64,000 nt of DNA from Laetmonice hystrix (Eukaryota): the NCBI GenBank assembly GCA_965235115.1, contig OZ249445.1, positions 4,278,001 through 4,342,000 of the forward strand, given 5' to 3'. Shown piece by piece: positions 19,766 through 42,900 of the stretch. Position 1 is the stretch's first letter, and each line of letters starts with the position of its first letter. The notes beneath the pieces were generated by a model. That model saw nothing but the letters and a program-made list of their open reading frames with translations. It was not told the DNA's origin and did not search any database. Both the position numbers and the translations under genes were made by a program.

Positions 19766-22700
19766 TCATTTACGTTTCTTTGCTTTCTTTCTCTTCCTGC
19801 TGTGTCTGTCTGTTGAGGAGTCAGTGTCCGAGTCACTGCTGGACTCGCTGCTACTGATGCTGTTCGGTTCGTGTCTCTTGTGCTTCGATTTCTTCCGTTT
19901 CTTTGCCTGAAATTTAAAAATGATACTTTGTATATTTTTTCTCACAGCAACATATTTAGTTGAACGCATTTTTTAAACTTATGTCCTCGTAAGTATACAG
20001 CACGAAGGGTGTTCTCTCTTCAAAGTAATATGAACGTATGGCAGTGAAGACTCAACTAAAAAAACGAGGATGAATATTCGTGCAATAAACTTTCTGTACT
20101 GTACCTTTGGTTCATCGTCACTGTCACTTTCTTCCTTGCTCTTTCTGTGCTTTCTCTTTTTCTTCTTGTGTTTCTTTTCCTGAGAAAAAAATGAAAGTTA
20201 ACATCACCCAAAGCCTTTGTCAGCTAAATATTTTAATTTAACAAGTCGACTTGTCGGAAAAGGATGGTAGTTGATGAAATGAGACATTCAACAAACATGT
20301 CATTCATATTTTTTTTGTACACATCATGCTAAAGTCATTGAAAGTATCTCTTGGCAGGTAGACTGGTAACATGTGGCAGGTAGACTGGTAACATGTGGCA
20401 GGTAGACTGGTAACATGTGGCAGGTAGACTGGTAACATGTGGCAGGTAGACTGGTAACATGTGACAGGTAGACTGGTAACATGTGACAGGTAGACTGGTA
20501 ACATGTGACAGGTAGACTGGTAACATGTGACAGGTAGACTGGTAACATGTGACAGGTAGACTGGTAACATGTGGCAGGTAGACTGGTAACATGTGGCAGG
20601 TAGACTGGTAACATGTGACAGGTAGACTGGTAACATGTGACAGGTAGACTGGTAACATGTGACAGGTAGACTGGTAACATGTGACAGGTAGACTGGTAAC
20701 ATGTGACAGGTAGACTGGTAACATGTGGCAGGTAGACTGGTAACATGTGGCAGGTAGACTGGTAACATGTGGCAGGTAGACTGGTAACATGTGACAGGTA
20801 GACTGGTAACATGTGACAGGTAGACTGGTAACATGTGACAGGTAGACTGGTAACATGTGGCAGGTAGACTGGTAACATGTGGCAGGTAGACTGGTAACAT
20901 GTGGCAGGTAGACTGGTAACATGTGGCAGGTAGACTGGTAACATGTGGCAGGTAGACTGGTAACATGTGACAGGTAGACTGGTAACATGTGACAGGTAGA
21001 CTGGTAACATGTGGCAGGTAGACTGGTAACATGTGGCAGGTAGACTGGTAACATGTGGCAGGTAGGCTGGTAACATGTGACAGGTAGGCTGGTAACATGT
21101 GACAGGTAGACTGGTAACATGTGGCAGGTAGGCTGGTAACATGTGACAGGTAGGCTGGTAACATGTGACAGGTAGACTGGTAACATGTGACAGGTAGACT
21201 GGTAACATGTGGCAGGTAGACTGGTAACATGTGACAGGTAGACTGGTAACATGTGACAGGTAGACTGGTAACATGTGGCAGGTAGACTGGTAACATGTGG
21301 CAGGTAGACTGGTAACATGTGACAGGTAGACTGGTAACATGTGACAGGTAGACTGGTAACATGTGACAGGTAGACTGGTAACATGTGACAGGTAGACTGG
21401 TAACATGTGACAGGTAGACTGGTAACATGTGGCAGGTAGACTGGTAACATGTGGCAGGTAGACTGGTAACATGTGGCAGGTAGACTGGTAACATGTGACG
21501 TTTTACAACGAGCATTAGTACGGTACTTAAGTGAACATTCACTTCAACATGATTGAATTAAAATGACTGTTACGTTTACCTTTTTCTTTTTCTTTGAGCT
21601 AGTCCCTGGGCCGGTGCTGTCTGTCGCGTTCTTGGCGCGTTCTATGAGATAGTCCACATCTGGTAGGAGATCGTAACCCGTGGTCGTGCTGGGGGTCTGG
21701 TAACAGTCCTGAGCAAAGTGACCTGTGACAGATAAACTAAGTGAACCTCACACCTACAGTCAATCTGAGCTAATAAACGAACCATGGGAATAGTATGTCA
21801 TCAGGTGATAAAAACAGGTCAGTAAATACAGAATTATGATACGGCTTTATCTAAACCAGCACACCCCTTAATGGTATACACTTAACTGAGGTCCCTGACA
21901 TATCTGTGTCTTGAATGCCGCACAAATTTTGTTTCTCTGACCAAATGTAGACCTACTCCTGGGACGAGAGAGCTCTAAGGGATGAGAACATGTACTAAAG
22001 TAATATCCATCACACCTTTTCCACCACATTTCTTGCATGTTGTATCGTAAACAGCACCAAGCTCAATCCTTGGGATTTCCTTTTTAAATCCAGTCTTCCT
22101 TCTCTGTTCATCAAGGCTAGAGAGAAAAGGAAAATATATTGTATTGAAAGGTAAGATACAGAATCCTATAGATCATTTTTCCTCTTTACTGGGAACTTAA
22201 TACAAACAATGGTGCAATACTGATTGCTTTGGGTGATCTTGGCTACCTTTCCATAGGGATCTGTGTGACTGAGTGCCTTAGTTTTGATTGTTACTACCGT
22301 TTCCATCATTTGGAATCCATAGGATTCTAAAAAGAGAAAACGTACGAAGCTTGTACGTGGTTGGGATCAAGGTCCTCTCCATTGCTCTGATTGACAGTTT
22401 TCATTGACAGACCAATCTTTCCTCCATCCTCCTGAAAAGAAAAGCTGTGTATCATCCACAGGGTAGACTTGATAGAAAATTATTCTGTAGTCTACCTTAA
22501 AAAAAGATTACTTCAGATATGGCTTTTATTGGTTGGTCAATATTCATTATGAAGGGAGAGAGGAGAAGGAAAACCTTAAAGGCCCCTCTGATTACCTCTG
22601 AGGTAATAACCTTGACCCAGACTTCCTCGCCGAAGTCGAGAACCTCCTCAGGGTGCTCAACCTTGGCCCTTGAGATCTGTGTCCTATGGACGAGTCCTGC

Positions 22701-33990: not shown

Positions 33991-36900
33991 ATGATGTCGG
34001 GTATTTTCCTGTGGAACCTGCTGACCCAGGCGTACAGTCCGAGCGCCACCTACTCCGGGCCCCAGCCACACATCGTCCTCCTGGTCGCCGATGATCTTGG
34101 TAATTGTACAGTACCGTTATCAGAATGGTCAAGTAGATTATGTACCGCCCCATGGTATAACGAAGACCTTGGTTGTGTTTTGACGAACTGAAGTTAGTTT
34201 AATTCGATCTCTCTACACTGACAAATGTTGCTAACTACGTGAAAAAACACGTGCGTCTCCCTCGGAGCGGTAGGCGATAATTCAGTCCTTCAAAGACGCG
34301 ACTACCACCTTCAGTACAACCCTAAAACGCGCGACTATAAATTTCAGTACGTACGATCGTCACACTCCCACCAATCACATTCACGTACAAACAACTATAC
34401 CTTTAAACATGTGATTCAAAACAAAAACTGAATGCCATTGAAGGCTTACACTAATACTAGAGTTGCAATAAAGTCATATAAGAATGTTCTCTGGGGTAAA
34501 TAAATCTTCTCATTATAAGAATGTTCGCTTGGTTAAATAAATGACCTCATTAAACTTAGGTCTCTAACTAGATCGCATCTGTCCGTTGGCATCAAACGAG
34601 AGAGAAAGAAGTTAAGTCATTCAGCTTCCAGCAGCACTGTCACTTTCTGTACAGGCCTTTCCAGGACCGTGGGCTGGCCGGTTCGCTTCCCAGCCTTATC
34701 CAGAACGGCCGGCATCCTGACCTTCACTCTCCGCACAAGTCCGTCATCACTTGCCGTGGTTTGCACAACTCGACCCAGTGGCCACCTATTCCTCCCAACT
34801 TCCTCCGTACAGACCAGAACTATGTCTCCAACCTTTACATTGCGTCGCGTCTTGTGCCACTTTGATCTGAGCTGTATGCTGCTCAAATACTCCTTTTTCC
34901 ATCTTGACCAAAATTGTTCACACAAAAACTGCACCTTCCTCCACCGTTTCTTGATATACAGGTCTTGTCGCACGAAGCTTCCTGGTGGGGGCATAGCCAC
35001 CTTACTTTTCATGGTCAGGATGTGGTTCGGCGTGAGTGGTTCCAAAGCTGTAGGATCGTTCAGTGTATCCGTAGTAAGCGGCCGACTATTCACGATTGAC
35101 ATGACCTCGTAGAGCAGGGTTCGAAGGGTTGAGGTGTCGAGACGACCGGCTGCTTCTTTCAGCAGTGTCGTTAGGATGCTCCGTACCGTTCGGATCTGGC
35201 GTTCCCAGAACCCTCCACAATGGCTGGCGTGAGGTGGATTGAAAGTGAATGTGCACTGTTGATCTGCCAAGAAACCTTCCACCCTTTCTGGGTCCAACTC
35301 CTTAAATGCTTCTGCCAGCTCGCCTGCTGCCCCAATGAAGTTGGTTCCCTGATCTGAGTGTAGTGTCGACACTGGCCCTCGAATGGCGATCAAGCACCTC
35401 AGCCCGTTGATGAAACAATCGGTGGTCATATCGTCTATTACCTCAAGGTGAACAGCACGGGAACATTTGCAGGTGAATATCAGCCCGTAACGCTTGACCT
35501 CCCTTCGTCCTTCCTTGACCACTATGGGGCCGAAACAGTCCATGCCAGTGTGGGTAAAAGGTGGAGTAGGTTCGATCCTTTCTTCGGGGAGGTCCGCCAT
35601 GCGCTGCTCCTCTAAAGGCCGACGCTTCTTCCGACATTCCACACACCAAAATATTGCACTCGAAACCGTTTTCGCACCACCCAGCACCCAATATCCGTTT
35701 GCTCTCAATGTATTGAGAGTCATTCCCTTGCCACTGTGGTTGGTTTGCTCATGGTAGTGTGCAAGGATCAGGTTCGTAATATGGGCACCCTTCGGCAGTA
35801 TTGCGGGGTGCTTAACACAAAGGGGTGATGTGGTCTTTCTGAGCCTCCCACCAACTCTCAGCACTCCATCCACTAGAACCGGGTCTAAGTTAGCCAGACG
35901 GTTTTTCCTTGGCAGACCGGGTGGTTGACTGAGCATTGCCTTCTCTTCCTTGAATTCCTGCTGTTGGAGTACTCTGACGAGCAACATTTCTGCCTTTCGT
36001 CTCTCTTCTACCGTGCTCATCTCCGAATGGGACCCTCCAGTGGCGCGACGGACCAGTCGAGCCACGACCTTGCAGACTAACTTCCAACTGGAGAACCTTT
36101 CGAGTCTGGTCAGCAGTGGATGCGAAGCTTCAGATCCGGTGGTAAGGAGTGAGTGGACCCTGACCTCAGGATCTCCCAAGTCTATTCCCAAGACAGGCTC
36201 CTCGAAAAACCTGAGTTCCTGCTCCTGCAAAAAGGTAGGTCCATTGAACCAACAAGACCGGTTCAACTCTTCAACAGCTTGACCTCTGGATGAGATGTCG
36301 GCAGGGTTGAACTCCGAAGGAACATAGTGCCATTGTGAAACCTCAGTTTGGGACCGTATGATCTCCACTCGATTGGCGACAAACGTGTGAAATTTCCTGC
36401 CTTCGTTTTGTATGTATGCCAACACCACTCTTGAGTCTGTCCAGAAGTGTTCAACCAGTTGTTCATATTGCAGCTCTCTCCCCAGCATCACACTTATTTT
36501 CACGGCTACCGTTGCTGCAGTAAGCTCTAGTCGTGGTATAGTGACGACCTTCGTGGGGGCAACCCGGGCCTTCCCAAAGACCAGGCTACAGTAGACACCT
36601 TCCTCAGTGACAAATCTCAGGTACGAACAAGTTCCATACCCTACAACACTGGCGTCCGAGAAATGGTGCAGTTCGATCACGACAGTGTCATCAACAAGGT
36701 TTGGGCAGAAGCATCTGGGAATCCTTATGTTGATCAGCTCCTTTAGACTCGACTTCCACGCCTCCCACTCGGGTTGCAAATCTGCAGGTAGGGTGTCGTC
36801 CCACCCGACCTTTCGTCTGCACATTTCCTGCAGAATCCGTTTACCGACTAGTATGAATGGGGCGACGAAGCCAAGCGGATCATACACTGATGCTACCATG

Positions 36901-39900
36901 GCTAATATACCGCGTCTTGTGGGAGGGCGTTCCTGAGGTGAGACGGAGAAGGTCAGGGTGTCCGAGTCCAGAGACCATTGAACTCCCAGAGCTCTCTCCA
37001 TGTGACCATCTTCAAGGTCTAAATCCTTGACTGCGGCTCTTTCCGATGATGCAATACTTGCCATCAACTCTTGACTGTTGGAAACAAACTTGTGCAAGTG
37101 CACCCCTCCTTTCCTGCACAGCTCCTGAGCCTCCCTGACTAGACATATGCCATCTTCAACAGTACGCACGCTCACGAGACCGTCGTCCACATAGAAATTG
37201 TTTCTAATGAACTCTGCTGCCTGAGGATAATCCGTGTCATACTTGTTGGCGATGTACTTCAGTCCATATATGGCGCAAGCAGGACTGGACCCAGCCCCGA
37301 ACAGGTGGACTCTCATTCTGTACACTTGAGGTTCGCTGTCTATGTTGCCATCCTCCCACCATAAGAACCTCAGGAGGTCTCTATCCTCGGGTCGGACAAG
37401 GAACTGGTGAAACATCCGCTCTATGTCACCGACGAATGCCACTGGATGTTTCCTAAACCTACAGAGGACTCCCACCAGAGGATTGTTCAGTTCAGGCCCT
37501 TTCAACAGGCAGTCATTGAGGGAGACACCCTGCTGTCTGGCTGAGCAGTCGAACACAACTCTAAATTTGTTAGGCCTTTTGGGGTGGTACACCCCATGGT
37601 GGGGAATGTAGTTTACTCGCCCGACTGCTCCTTCATTTGTGACACGCTCGGCCTCGCCTTTCTCGAGCACATCCGCCATAAATGCTCTATAATCAGCGGC
37701 ATAACTTGCGTTGCCTTTGAACTTCCGTCTGAGGTGTTCCAGCCTTATCTCCGCCATCCGTCTGTTGTTAGGCATGGATATAGTTGGTGACTTTACAGGC
37801 AGAGGCATTTCCACATGCCCATCTCCCCTTTGACGTGCCTGTTCACTCATGATCTTTACAAACAAGATGTCCTGCTGTGAAACCTTTTTCTCAGTGACAT
37901 ATTCATTTTCCACGAAATCAGACTCCAAGGCATTTATGACTTCACGAGGCGATATCACTGGAGCCTCCCTTGTAGAGATTCGATGACAAATGCCAGACTG
38001 TCGATCCAAGCAGGGGTTAGACATGCCGACCACACTCCATCCCAAATCTGTCTTTTGGGCGAACGGCTCCGATTCACTTCCCCCGATGACTTCGCGTGGA
38101 GTGAGAGCCCTGGGGCAGTCATAGCCAATTAGCAATCCAACCTCGCATGACTGTAGTGGCGGGACTTCATGTGCAATGTGACGCAAGTGGGGCCACTGTG
38201 AGGTGGTATGACAGGTGGGTATGTGCGACTTGTCGACGGGGATGTAGTCCCGGGTGTAGACTGTGGGTAGACCGACTCTTATCTCTGACCGCATGCCGCG
38301 AACCTGTAACCCTTCCAGCCGTTTGCAGTTTACTTCTGTGCCCGTCGACGTCATGGTACTGAGTTTCAGCTTCACTGGGGTACCCCCATGACACAACATC
38401 TGGCTAACCTCATCTAACACGAAAGTAGTGTCGCTCTGGGTGTCTAGAAGGGCGTACACTAGACACTCCTCATCAGGCTGCCCTACGTGCGACAACCATA
38501 CAGGTACGATGCTCGATGTCACTGGCAGCCGTTTGACACTGTGGGATATGGCTTGGGGTCCTGCCGGTCCTGTCTCCTTTACTTCTCCCCTCTTCCTCTC
38601 CTCATGCAAACAGGTCGGATGTCGTCCTTTACAGGTTTTGCATGTGTGACGTCTCCGGCAGTCGCTGGAAAAATGCCCTTTCCTCAAGCAGCCAAAACAA
38701 AGATGATTTGACCGAATAAACTCCCTCTTTTCGGGCATCTCCCTTCCTGCAAACTTAGCACACGCTGCTACGGCATGGTTGATGTCCTGGCAAAACATGC
38801 AAGGTGACTTGGGAGTAGTGTCGAGTTTTCCAGAGGCCTGAGCCGACTGACGTGACCCCACAGGCTGTGTCGATACCTTGACTTGAGATGGCTCACGGGC
38901 TCGTGATTCACCTTTCACGACGAATATGTTTGCTTCTTCTACCCCATCAGTGGCCAGACTTCTTCCTTTGGTTTCTCTGGTAGATACCTTTCCTCCTTTG
39001 TCCAACGACTTGAGGAGGTATGGCGAACAAACTGGGTTGCACACAACTCTGGCTTCTCCCTTTAAGAACTGGACGAATGTATGGAAATTGGGGTACGACT
39101 GGGTTTTTTCCATCTTCCCGACAACAACCCGATTCCAACGTGTCACTAGCCATTCAGGCAGCTTTTCCAGTATCTTCCTGTTTTCCTCACAGTCACTGAG
39201 GATCTCCAAGCCAGGGATATGTGGGATGGCACTCGACGTGGCAAACAAAAAGTCGCTGAAATCCCGTAACCCATAGACATCTTTGGCTCCCACCTTAGGC
39301 CACTTAGCTATTTTATCTCTGTAGGCCTCCTTTATCAGGAACACGTCCCCGAACCTTTCTTCCAGCACCCTCCATGCCTCGTAGTAGGCTCCCTCAGAAT
39401 CATGGTAGAAGAATCCTTCAATTGCCTTCCTTGCTTGGCCAGTTAAGTACTCCCTCAGATAATACATCTTTTCGCTCGCGCTAAGGCCCTTGCCCTCCAC
39501 CAGTGCGTCAAATGTCAGCTTCCATTCTACGAACCCAAGTGGGTCTCCAGAGAACACAGTTGGCTTAGCAGGAGGAAGTCTGCTGGCAGCAATGGACTCG
39601 CTGAACAGCCTAGCCAGCATGGTTATGTCCCCTCGAGGCTGTGGTGGTGTCCCAAAGTGTGGTTCACCTTGATCTACATGTGGCACCTCGTCTACAAAGT
39701 TTGTCACTTGGGGGATAGGCTGAACATCTGGATGGATAGGACTGTGGCGTGGAGTTGCAGGTTGGAAGCTAGGGGCAAGTGGATTCATGTTGGATGGCGT
39801 GTCCCGTCGCAGCCTTCCCTCTCTCGTCTCCATCGAACCCTCATCACAGGCCTCCTCTAAGACTTTAGATCTGGCCTCTGCTGCTTTAACATTGGCCTGA

Positions 39901-42900
39901 GCCTGCATGCTCTCCAACCTCATCTTTCCCTCCTCCAACTTGGTCTGTAGGTGTAGCAGTTTGACCTTTTGGACCTGTTCCTCTTCTAGAGCCTTGAGCC
40001 TTTCTCTTTCCTCTGCTAGTTCCGCTTCTGCTCTCACTCTCAAAGAGTACACGGATGACCTTCCAGTCCCAGCCGATGACGGGCAAGATTGTTGTTCACT
40101 AGCTGATTCCCCAAAGATTGATGGGTGAGCATGTTTCATGTCTCGCGTTTGCTCCCGCTCGTGTTTAAAGTCAAACTCCTCTGGATCCTCCAGACGGCGA
40201 GTGGTCAAAGTTTGGCCAAGCGCTTCTGAGATTTCAGCACAATTATCCACCTTCATAACGACTTCCTTAGTAGGGGCAACCAGTATCCTTAGCTCCTCGT
40301 ATGATTTCAGAACTTCACTATGGCGTTGGTTCAGTATAATTTGCATCTCAGATAGGTGTCCAAGTGTCAGTGGCGAGAGAAGACACTTCCTAGTTTTGGA
40401 GGCAGTCTCTCTCCACCTTTCGTAGGCGGAGTTAACTGTACGTGTTCTCCGGCTGATTTCCTCGTCAAGGTTTTGCTGTGCCTTTTCCGTCAACTTCCGC
40501 TCTCTGTTGCTCCTTCGAACACCATCCTCTTGCGGTGGTTGGGGTTCGAGTCTTGAGACCTGTCCCTGATGCTCCATAACTTGCACGTGATCTGGATTCG
40601 TCTCGGGATTAGGTATATTGCCCACGTCTGCGTCTGGCTTCGGTAGCTGTGCTCGTGCCTCTCCTTCTTGTTCCATAACTTGCACGTGATCTGGATTCGT
40701 CTTGGGATTAGGTATATTGCCTACGTCTGCATCCGACTTCGGTAGCTGTGCTCGTGCCTCTCCCTCTTGTTCCCCTTCTACTGAGTGACTGCGATTTGAC
40801 ATGATGAAGTTCTCTTCCTAACTAACTTGAACGACGGTTTAATATACTTCAGCAATGTCTTGACACAACTTCTTGTCACTGTATTGACGAGGCTCAGCAC
40901 CAACCTGAAGTACGGTAGTTGGCAATGGCCTAGTAACGACCTGACAATCCAATCAACGACTTGACACACATCCCAGGTGCTGACGATAACTTGGTTTAAC
41001 GTGACACTGCAGCAAACTCGACGACGACATGACACAGTCTCAGCACCAACCTGATGATTGGAGTAGTTGGCGACGATCACACATGTCACGACACAGCAGG
41101 CCTCGATGGCGTCACACGGTATCCACCCGAACTCCAACGTAATCAGTGTCTTTCGGATTCCATCCAGACTAGTAGCAACGACGTCGGACTGTAGCATCGA
41201 TGCATAATATGGTAGCGAAGGGCTTACTTGCGAGTTGTCCGGTAGGCTTCAGCTCAGGCATTCCCCGACATCACGGAGCACACGCAGCACATGGCTTCAC
41301 GTTTAGCTTGCGCTGTGTTGTTGTGATCGCGTGTGTTTTTTCACTGTACCGCCCCATGGTATAACGAAGACCTTGGTTGTGTTTTGACGAACTGAAGTTA
41401 GTTTAATTCGATCTCTCTACACTGACAAATGTTGCTAACTACGTGAAAAAACACGTGCGTCTCCCTCGGAGCGGTAGGCGATAATTCAGTCCTTCAAAGA
41501 CGCGACTACCACCTTCAGTACAACCCTAAAACGCGCGACTATAAATTTCAGTACGTACGATCGTCACAGATTAATTGGCGCACACTGAGCATGTATTATA
41601 CACAAAAAGGTCAGTGCTCTTTAGATAGGGTCTGTTTGATTATTGCATGACAAAAACTGTTGAGAAACACAGGAACGCGGCACGGAGGCCGAGAGCTGTA
41701 CGGTCCGGGGCCCAGATACTTCTCAACATGACTGAAGTGGCGGATGCAGTACAGCACACCTGCGTTGATCAGGCTGCTTGTTCACCACGTAGCCTCCTCA
41801 GACCCCACACCGCCCTCCAAATCCTGAATCCGCCCCTGAATTTACCGTCATTGTGATACTGTACACGATAACAGGCGTTTTGTTTCGGTGTCTGGAGGTT
41901 CTCTTGTCTCTTTTCTTTCTTGTCGTTCTTCCAAAAGTGAGAACGCAACTCTATAACCAACACATCCTTGAGACATCTGCAGTTAAACTAAATTTTATCT
42001 AACTTAATTTGGGTAGATAATTTTATGCAAAAACAGAGTCAATACAGGATGTACTAAGTACCATAGGGTTTCCAGTAACCCCCACATTATAGGAATGGGG
42101 CATATTGCCACATAATGGCACACGAAAGGTAAGTAGGTCTATAGATCTCCAAATTATCTGTTAATTATCTACTGCAGATATAGGTTTAGTTAGCCTGCAT
42201 GTTATTGTGAGATGTTGGAAATGGAAAATAACATGGACTTATGACAAGGGCCGTACGTGGTGTACCCAGAAACTGGACCCAGGGGGGTGCTGGAAATAAC
42301 CAACGTCGTAGGCGCTGCAAATTGGCAACAAGCGCACCAAAAAAACAAACCCCCAAAAATTTGGCAAATTGAGGGGGGTGCTTGAGCACCTCAAGCACCC
42401 CCCCCCCCGGGTACGCTACTGAAGGGTGCATGGAAACAGTTGCTGCATGGCCTGTCGGTCAACCGCGGTCGGTAAACACTTGAGGCCACACGGCTCGTTT
42501 CAGGAGCTATATATATGACCTGCCTTCCCAGTGGCCATCTTTTATGGGCTGGATAGTATAACCAGAGTACAATTTTAATTTCGTACCTGAGCAGTGATGT
42601 GAGGGGGAGAAGAAAGGTCAGCCGCCCACCCGCCCTTAAAAAACACCTGGCCAGTGGTCACACACCCATAACGTTGTCGCGATATCTCCATATCGGCGTT
42701 TTCGTGACCTCAGACCTACTTCCGGCGACGCCAGGTATAACAAACGCTTTCAGGCATTCTTTCCTTCGTTAGGTTTCGCTCGTAAAAAAACACGTTGGAG
42801 TAAATTACGCGTGAAATAGGAACGCCTGTATGCCTGGGGTGGGGCAGGGGGCAGGCATATAGATCTATAGTTTGCATTCACTGGCATCTTTTGGTAAAAT

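Follow-up and report, generated by a model that had tools for sequence, protein, structure and literature searches.

A BEL/Pao retrotransposon of Laetmonice hystrix with a self-complementary putative primer-binding site: candidate self-priming in a clade found in several animal phyla

Results

The element and its boundaries

The window analysed here, a 64-kb stretch of Laetmonice hystrix DNA (contig OZ249445.1), contains a single LTR retrotransposon, which lies on the minus strand and is called F0 below. Its 5' LTR (41345..41568, minus strand, 224 nt, TG..CA) is 100% identical to the direct repeat at 34141..34364 (minus strand, 224 nt), which forms the 3' LTR and is preceded, in the sense direction, by the adjoining polypurine tract GGTGGGAG (34365..34372, minus strand). 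A 5-bp target-site duplication, GATTA, flanks the element, with the upstream copy in the element sense at 41569..41573 and the downstream copy at 34136..34140. Most of the interior is occupied by a 2061-aa gag-pol polyprotein ORF (34617..40802, minus strand). Its Pfam matches are DUF1759 (gag-like, E = 6.8e-11, aa 417-550), the Pao-type aspartic peptidase Peptidase_A17 (E = 7.9e-45, full-length, aa 1295-1457), a weak match to Integrase_H2C2 (aa 1676-1727) and the integrase tail DUF5641 (E = 1.3e-25, aa 1952-2056), in the order gag, pol, integrase that is found in BEL/Pao elements. An upstream ORF of 139 aa in the leader (40778..41197, minus strand) overlaps the start of the main ORF and gave zero matches in a Pfam search.

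An earlier note on this DNA, made from its letters, had assigned the element to BEL/Pao. The combination of Peptidase_A17, DUF1759 and DUF5641 is the signature of this superfamily and upholds the assignment, and the TG..CA LTRs, a target duplication in the range of 4-6 bp and the polypurine tract before the 3' LTR are further features of the BEL/Pao family (Belpaoviridae). The Pfam search of the 2061-aa ORF returned Pao-type domains only, and no gypsy-type pol with a chromodomain integrase that would place the element among the Tf1/sushi elements. Searching the genome assembly (627 Mb, 35 contigs) revealed four full copies, 98-100% identical, and two diverged LTR fragments. With its identical LTRs and its intact reading frame, the element at 34141-41568 is a young insertion.

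A sequence complementary to the LTR follows the 5' LTR

In the sense direction the 5' LTR ends in ..GGTACA and is directly followed by GTGAAAAAACAC, a putative primer-binding site that runs from the first base after the LTR onward (41333..41344, minus strand) and is identical in all four genomic copies. Its exact complement, GTGTTTTTTCAC, occupies positions 115-126 of both LTRs, at 41443..41454 (minus strand) in the 5' LTR, where it is the candidate self-primer word, and at 34239..34250 (minus strand) in the 3' LTR. The earlier note had reported this 12-mer and its complement, and we found them at exactly these three sites in the window, compared to 0.04 sites expected from shuffles (three or more in 0 of 100 shuffles). 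Simple arithmetic puts the chance of one 12-mer complement in a 224-nt LTR at about 1e-5. The pairing geometry that the note described, with the 3' C of the LTR word opposite the first base past the LTR, was found as well, and TGG is absent from the first ~80 nt of the F0 leader, as it had stated. Its further claim of 3 more pairs after 2 mismatches holds for the F0 sequence, but these pairs are not conserved: one copy, C29, carries a 2-nt deletion exactly there, just outside the duplex, and we gave them zero weight.

The run of six T in the word and of six A in the site are kept throughout the four genomic copies, in 8 of 8 LTRs and 4 of 4 post-LTR sites. The minimum free energy fold of the F0 RNA from word to site is closed by the 12-bp helix (z = -2.1). 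The fold was also inspected for a U5-IR-like stem-loop next to the duplex, a trait of the Tf1 type; in F0 the helix gains 3 bp beyond a bulged A, an extension that is not general across the other families. Of the two diverged LTRs (L009 and L010, T5 variant), one is solo or truncated and the other belongs to a rearranged fragment. The position 7 kb upstream held no 5' LTR, and neither informs on covariation within the family.

Pairing co-varies among BEL/Pao families

A six-frame search with the reverse transcriptase (RT) region returned at least 86 BEL/Pao matches in the Laetmonice genome, 41-58% identical to F0. We assembled a sample of 26 elements, made of 18 BEL/Pao families of this genome (F0 to F17) and 8 elements from other assemblies. 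The 17 further families were represented by one copy each, whose 5' and 3' LTR regions were compared, and LTR ends were set by this comparison together with the target duplication. For F1, whose 3' LTR is truncated, the LTR end was read from the 5' LTR alone.

In 24 of the 26 elements, a word inside the LTR is perfectly complementary over 7-15 nt to the post-LTR sequence, with the pairing anchored at +1 in 21 of them and at +3 in three; the remaining two elements (F9 and F17) pair only with a 3-nt bulge. Among the Laetmonice families anchored at +1, the complement spans 12 nt in F0, 10 nt in F2 (word AGTTTTTCAC, site GTGAAAAACT), F11, F14 and F15, 9 nt in F3 and F6, 8 nt in F1, F4, F5 and F7, and 7 nt in F13 and F16. 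It begins at +3, after a 2-nt spacer, in F8 and F12 (15 nt each) and in F10 (9 nt).

Covariation of word and site across families had been set beforehand as a test of the self-priming reading, and it was observed: in every family examined, a family-specific LTR word matches the post-LTR sequence of its own element, with many changes on both sides. The lengths of the T-run in the word and of the A-run in the site are 6, 5, 4 or 3 among families. The F5 pair AGCTTCAC/GTGAAGCT contrasts with AGTTTCAC/GTGAAACT, and CAGAGTTTAC/GTAAACTCTG in F11 with CAGAGTTGAC/GTCAACTCTG in F14. In F1, the 5' LTR contains GTTTTCAC, then 91 nt, then TTACA at the LTR end, directly followed by GTGAAAAC; a reading of F1 as an exception with a 121-nt 'LTR' was rejected, its 3' LTR being truncated. 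We also considered a positional rule, in which the word is the ..AC|GG sequence about 90-100 nt before the LTR end. This rule predicted a site GTAGCC.. for F8, which was wrong. F8 pairs over 15 nt with another LTR word, 203 nt upstream, so that complementarity held where position failed.

The specificity of the pairing was quantified on the elements other than those from Amia and Danio, which were added afterwards and lie outside the permutation, pair-table and poly(A)-signal statistics. Pairing scores of post-LTR sequences with their own LTRs summed to 217, compared to 127 ± 8 for permuted LTRs; the permuted maximum was 165, and none of 20,000 permutations reached 217. Control windows deeper in the same leaders showed complements of at least 8 nt in 1.5% and of at least 9 nt in 0.5% of cases. 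In a register-anchored table of 22 elements, from which F9 and F17 were excluded because they pair only with a bulge, pair positions 1-7 were 100% Watson-Crick and positions 3-8 carried 3-4 pair types, while sliding the partner by 1-3 nt reduced pairing to 22-40%. The low complexity of the F0 word, with its run of six T, could have suggested that an A/T-rich word pairs with the 12-mer site by chance. This explanation is refuted by the controls and retains next to no probability: 24 of 26 independent elements, whose sequences differ, show the layout again, and neither shuffles nor slid partners came anywhere near the observed values.

Relatives in other animals share the layout

Relatives from other animals were obtained through a protein-collection search (56-61% identical in the RT region), and their contigs were then examined. 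Each carries an LTR word and a matching post-LTR site: AGATCTTAC and GTAAGATCT in the hemichordate Glandiceps, AGATCTCAC and GTGAGATCT in the starfish Patiria, GTTTTTAC and GTAAAAAC in the urchin Lytechinus, AGTTCTTAC and GTAAGAACT in the oyster Saccostrea and, among fishes, GTTTTCAC and GTGAAAAC in Acanthochromis, AGTTCTCAC and GTGAGAACT in Amia, and AGTTTCAC and GTGAAACT in zebrafish (Danio). A polypurine tract ending in GGTGGGAG also lies ahead of the 3' LTR in the fish, starfish, urchin and oyster relatives. The layout is general for a clade spanning several phyla and not peculiar to the F0 copy. In a 94%-identical relative found in an ENA assembly, the A6 site is kept and both LTRs have T5, which leaves 8 bp, a 1-nt bulge and 3 bp. 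This relative is an older copy with broken reading frames.

No tRNA-type site or host primer was found

We searched for an ordinary primer by several routes. No TGG or other tRNA-type site follows the LTR in any family examined, and neither ARAGORN nor Rfam gave a match on the element region. The 18-nt site for the 3' end of tRNA-Arg or tRNA-Gly, as given by the ICTV, was found in 0 of 26 elements. For the 14-mer complement of the F0 site we counted 13 occurrences in the 627-Mb genome, exactly as many as for a reversed control (13), and 3 of these 13 occurrences are the element's own sites. These searches found no host tRNA or tRNA fragment that matches the site. As a control, Ty3/gypsy elements of the Laetmonice genome were handled alike; three of four windows lacked one or both LTRs, and in the fourth a TGG-type site begins one base beyond the LTR, so that the method does recover an ordinary site. 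No tRNA was found behind this TGG-type site at the two loci checked.

These data bear on the possibility that a conserved host small RNA ending in ..GUUUUCAC primes the elements and that the copy of the word in the LTR is incidental. Similar words of the type (A)GTTTT(C)AC do occur in many families, fish and annelid included. However, the sites vary widely by family (GTGAGATCT, GTCAACTCTG, GTTCTAT, GTAATCACACGATTA, ATTGAACAAAACTTG and others), and since they differ between families a single host RNA cannot explain them. Each site fits its own LTR better than other LTRs, a point on which the permutation test also disfavours this explanation, and no element lacks the word in its LTR. Moreover, a Pol III transcript could not contain a run of six U, and the U-runs of 4-6 would terminate Pol III. 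We regard a host small RNA as very improbable.

A second alternative accepts the duplex but not its use. The word and the site could form a structural stem, either of the retroviral U5-leader or U5-IR type or a helix for packaging, dimerisation or translation control, with a host RNA or tRNA fragment acting as the real primer elsewhere in the leader. Pairings between U5 and the leader do occur near the retroviral primer-binding site (PMC5445492), pairing by itself is no proof of priming, and bulges are tolerated in two elements. On the other hand, the end of the duplex coincides exactly with the LTR boundary in 21 elements and lies 2 nt off in three. This counts against a structural role, because it is the 3' end of a primer that sets this boundary. 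The results of the tRNA and Rfam searches, and the lack of a genomic excess of the site complement, also speak against another primer. In retroviruses too LTR (U5/R) sequence pairs near the primer-binding site, but the retroviral stems flank a tRNA-bound site, whereas the BEL/Pao stem takes up the site itself and stops where the LTR does. A structural stem seems to us unlikely, though a better candidate than a host small RNA.

Position of the word within the LTR

The end of the word lies 71-203 nt ahead of the LTR end, mostly 85-130 nt. In the F0 5' LTR, an ATTAAA poly(A) signal (41402..41407, minus strand) follows the word at a distance of 36 nt and is itself followed by 57 nt of LTR, and 23 of the first 24 LTRs analysed contain an AATAAA or ATTAAA beyond the word. 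The start of the complement coincides in many families with the AG of a YAG (C|AGTT, for example), a sequence similar to a metazoan initiator that would fit a transcription start at this point. TATA-like words some 30 nt ahead of the LTR word were found in a few families only and inconsistently, and we set them aside as weak support for such a start. A G or GG usually follows the word directly. This ..AC|G(G) junction is conserved, and the GT/AC closing pair is fixed in most elements; the junction may be a hint of an RNase H-dependent cut at the duplex end. Taken together, U3 may be followed by an R that begins at the word and holds the poly(A) signal, and then by U5 and the site, an arrangement that would match Tf1.

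Discussion

The covariation of word and site and the absence of a host tRNA match support the self-priming that the earlier note had proposed for F0. We consider it probable that F0 and its clade, like Tf1, use a stretch of their own RNA, and not a tRNA, to begin the minus strand. The genomic RNA would start at, or within ~2 nt of, the LTR-internal word (GUGUUUUUUCAC in F0, LTR positions 115-126), which would make the word at 41443..41454 the start of R. The 5' end of this RNA would fold back over about 100 nt and pair with its complement directly after U5. Cleavage directly behind the word (..AC|G) would then leave a 3'-OH opposite the first base past the LTR; the cutting enzyme may be the element's own RNase H, as suggested by the Tf1 case. 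Reverse transcriptase would extend this primer through U5 and R into a strong-stop DNA, which would transfer to the 3' R, predicted to end after the ATTAAA signal. Because plus-strand synthesis would copy the primer back, the LTR word and the site would stay complementary during drift, which would explain their covariation.

In Tf1, the 5' end of the mRNA pairs with the primer-binding site and is then cut to yield the primer (PMC4600332; PMC6317226). Tf1 and Tf2 of Schizosaccharomyces pombe, Tj1 of S. japonicus and the Tf1/sushi chromoviruses share with the BEL/Pao elements studied here a site complementary to their own LTR-derived RNA and not to a tRNA. Two more traits of the Tf1 type were found: in F0 the duplex ends at the first base past the LTR, and site and self-primer co-vary among relatives. 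The length of the word is also similar, 11 nt in Tf1 and 7-15 nt in our sample. The systems differ in several other respects. Three BEL/Pao families have a 2-nt spacer unlike Tf1, and in most elements the closing pair is a fixed GT/AC and the word is followed by a conserved G(G). Tf1/sushi elements carry a gypsy-type pol, whereas the Pao-type peptidase, DUF1759 and DUF5641 are found here. Start and cleavage have been described for Tf1 and are predicted for the BEL/Pao elements. F0 appears to work like Tf1 while standing outside the Tf1/sushi clade, and an origin independent of Tf1 self-priming is plausible, because the superfamily differs.

Self-priming has been described for Tf1/sushi elements and predicted for the plant Tcn1 and TAR elements (PMC6317226). 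The plant prediction was made from evidence like that used here, namely a 5' LTR stretch of at least 10 nt that is complementary to sequence lying 0-5 nt beyond the LTR (PMC6317226). The plant candidates belong to gypsy and copia lineages, and BEL/Pao is not named there as self-priming (PMC6317226). Surveys of BEL/Pao elements and of the Sinbad lineage leave the primer site undiscussed (PMC3118150; PMC554778; PMC8220671). A full-text search of the literature, with many subscription papers outside its reach, found nothing relevant on BEL/Pao self-priming. To our knowledge, BEL/Pao elements are restricted to animals, and we know of no experimental demonstration of self-priming other than for Tf1-type elements.

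The ICTV profile of Belpaoviridae describes tRNA-primed replication, with an 18-nt site to which tRNA-Arg or tRNA-Gly is complementary at its 3' end (PMC8742986). In this profile the tRNA-Arg/tRNA-Gly site is a descriptive feature and not a classification criterion. The canonical members (genus Semotivirus: Tas, BEL and Pao) resemble F0 in their gag-pol organisation, Pao peptidase, LTRs, polypurine tract and 4-6-bp duplication, but a tRNA site is given for them and self-complementary, family-specific sites are found here. Our observations contradict the current description of the family, and the account of Belpaoviridae would need revision if the self-priming reading is true. We lean, with little more than even confidence, towards a broader proposal in which self-priming is the general, perhaps ancestral, initiation mode of a large BEL/Pao clade present in annelids, molluscs, echinoderms, hemichordates and fishes. 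The primer would then be the first 7-15 nt of the genomic RNA, set by an initiator-like start (C|AGTT..), and for that reason the length of the binding site would read out the transcription start.

If true, BEL/Pao self-priming would put the trait in all three superfamilies of LTR retrotransposons, and it bears on whether self-priming is ancestral or evolved repeatedly. As the element would not depend on a host tRNA, it might also escape tRNA-fragment-based restriction: defences directed against tRNA-type primer sites would not see such elements. The failure of tRNA-based site finders on these elements is explained by the self-complementary layout, which also provides a rule for their annotation, which is to seek an LTR word complementary to the sequence at +1 or +3 after the LTR.

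Related BEL/Pao elements

A related element on an ENA contig (L078) shares 94% amino acid identity with the BEL/Pao retrotransposon of the window. Within the LTR-internal word complementary to the proposed self-priming site, T5 is found in both its 5′ and 3′ LTRs versus A6 in the site, and the word of the 5′ LTR carries an additional G-to-A change. The LTRs of this relative are 98.8% identical to each other and its reading frames are broken.

In the F1 family of the Laetmonice hystrix genome, the end of U5 together with the site (GTAGTTACA followed by GTGAAAACGTA; L042:930-965) is near-identical to its counterpart at the 5′ LTR end of an element from the damselfish Acanthochromis (L083), despite the two belonging to different phyla. 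This likeness could reflect either strong constraint or horizontal spread. In the F1 copy, the match of the 3′ LTR (L043, G000 C2:40230981-40232581) to its own 5′ LTR ends after 121 nt. This copy is rearranged or bears an insertion, because a 147-nt segment of its 5′ flank recurs twice further downstream.

Copies of three other families, F8, F9 and F17 (L056, L058 and L076; G000 C3:2765xxxx, C18:1860xxxx and C8:1339xxxx, respectively), are all hosted by copies of one repeat of about 850 nt containing CATGTTTCCATGCCTTTATTGT. This shared surrounding may correspond to an insertion preference or to another mobile element.

Coding regions and insertion locus

The N-terminal, gag-side portion of the polyprotein ORF contains two tandem 99-nt units (window 40559-40756) that are 90% identical to each other, an in-frame duplication of 33 codons. 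The start of this ORF is overlapped over 25 nt by a 139-residue ORF located in the leader (window 40778-41197, minus strand), for which a Pfam search found no match; it could be an upstream part of gag lying in another frame, or a chance ORF.

On the plus strand, a first coding exon followed by GTAAT (window 33991-34100) encodes what looks like a signal peptide and a sulfatase N-terminal motif. The insertion point of the element lies in the next intron, about 40 nt from where that intron begins, and the element is antisense to the gene. Elsewhere in the window, tandem copies of a 22-nt unit form a long array from about 20220 to 21500, in which at least 52 register-shifted copies were counted.
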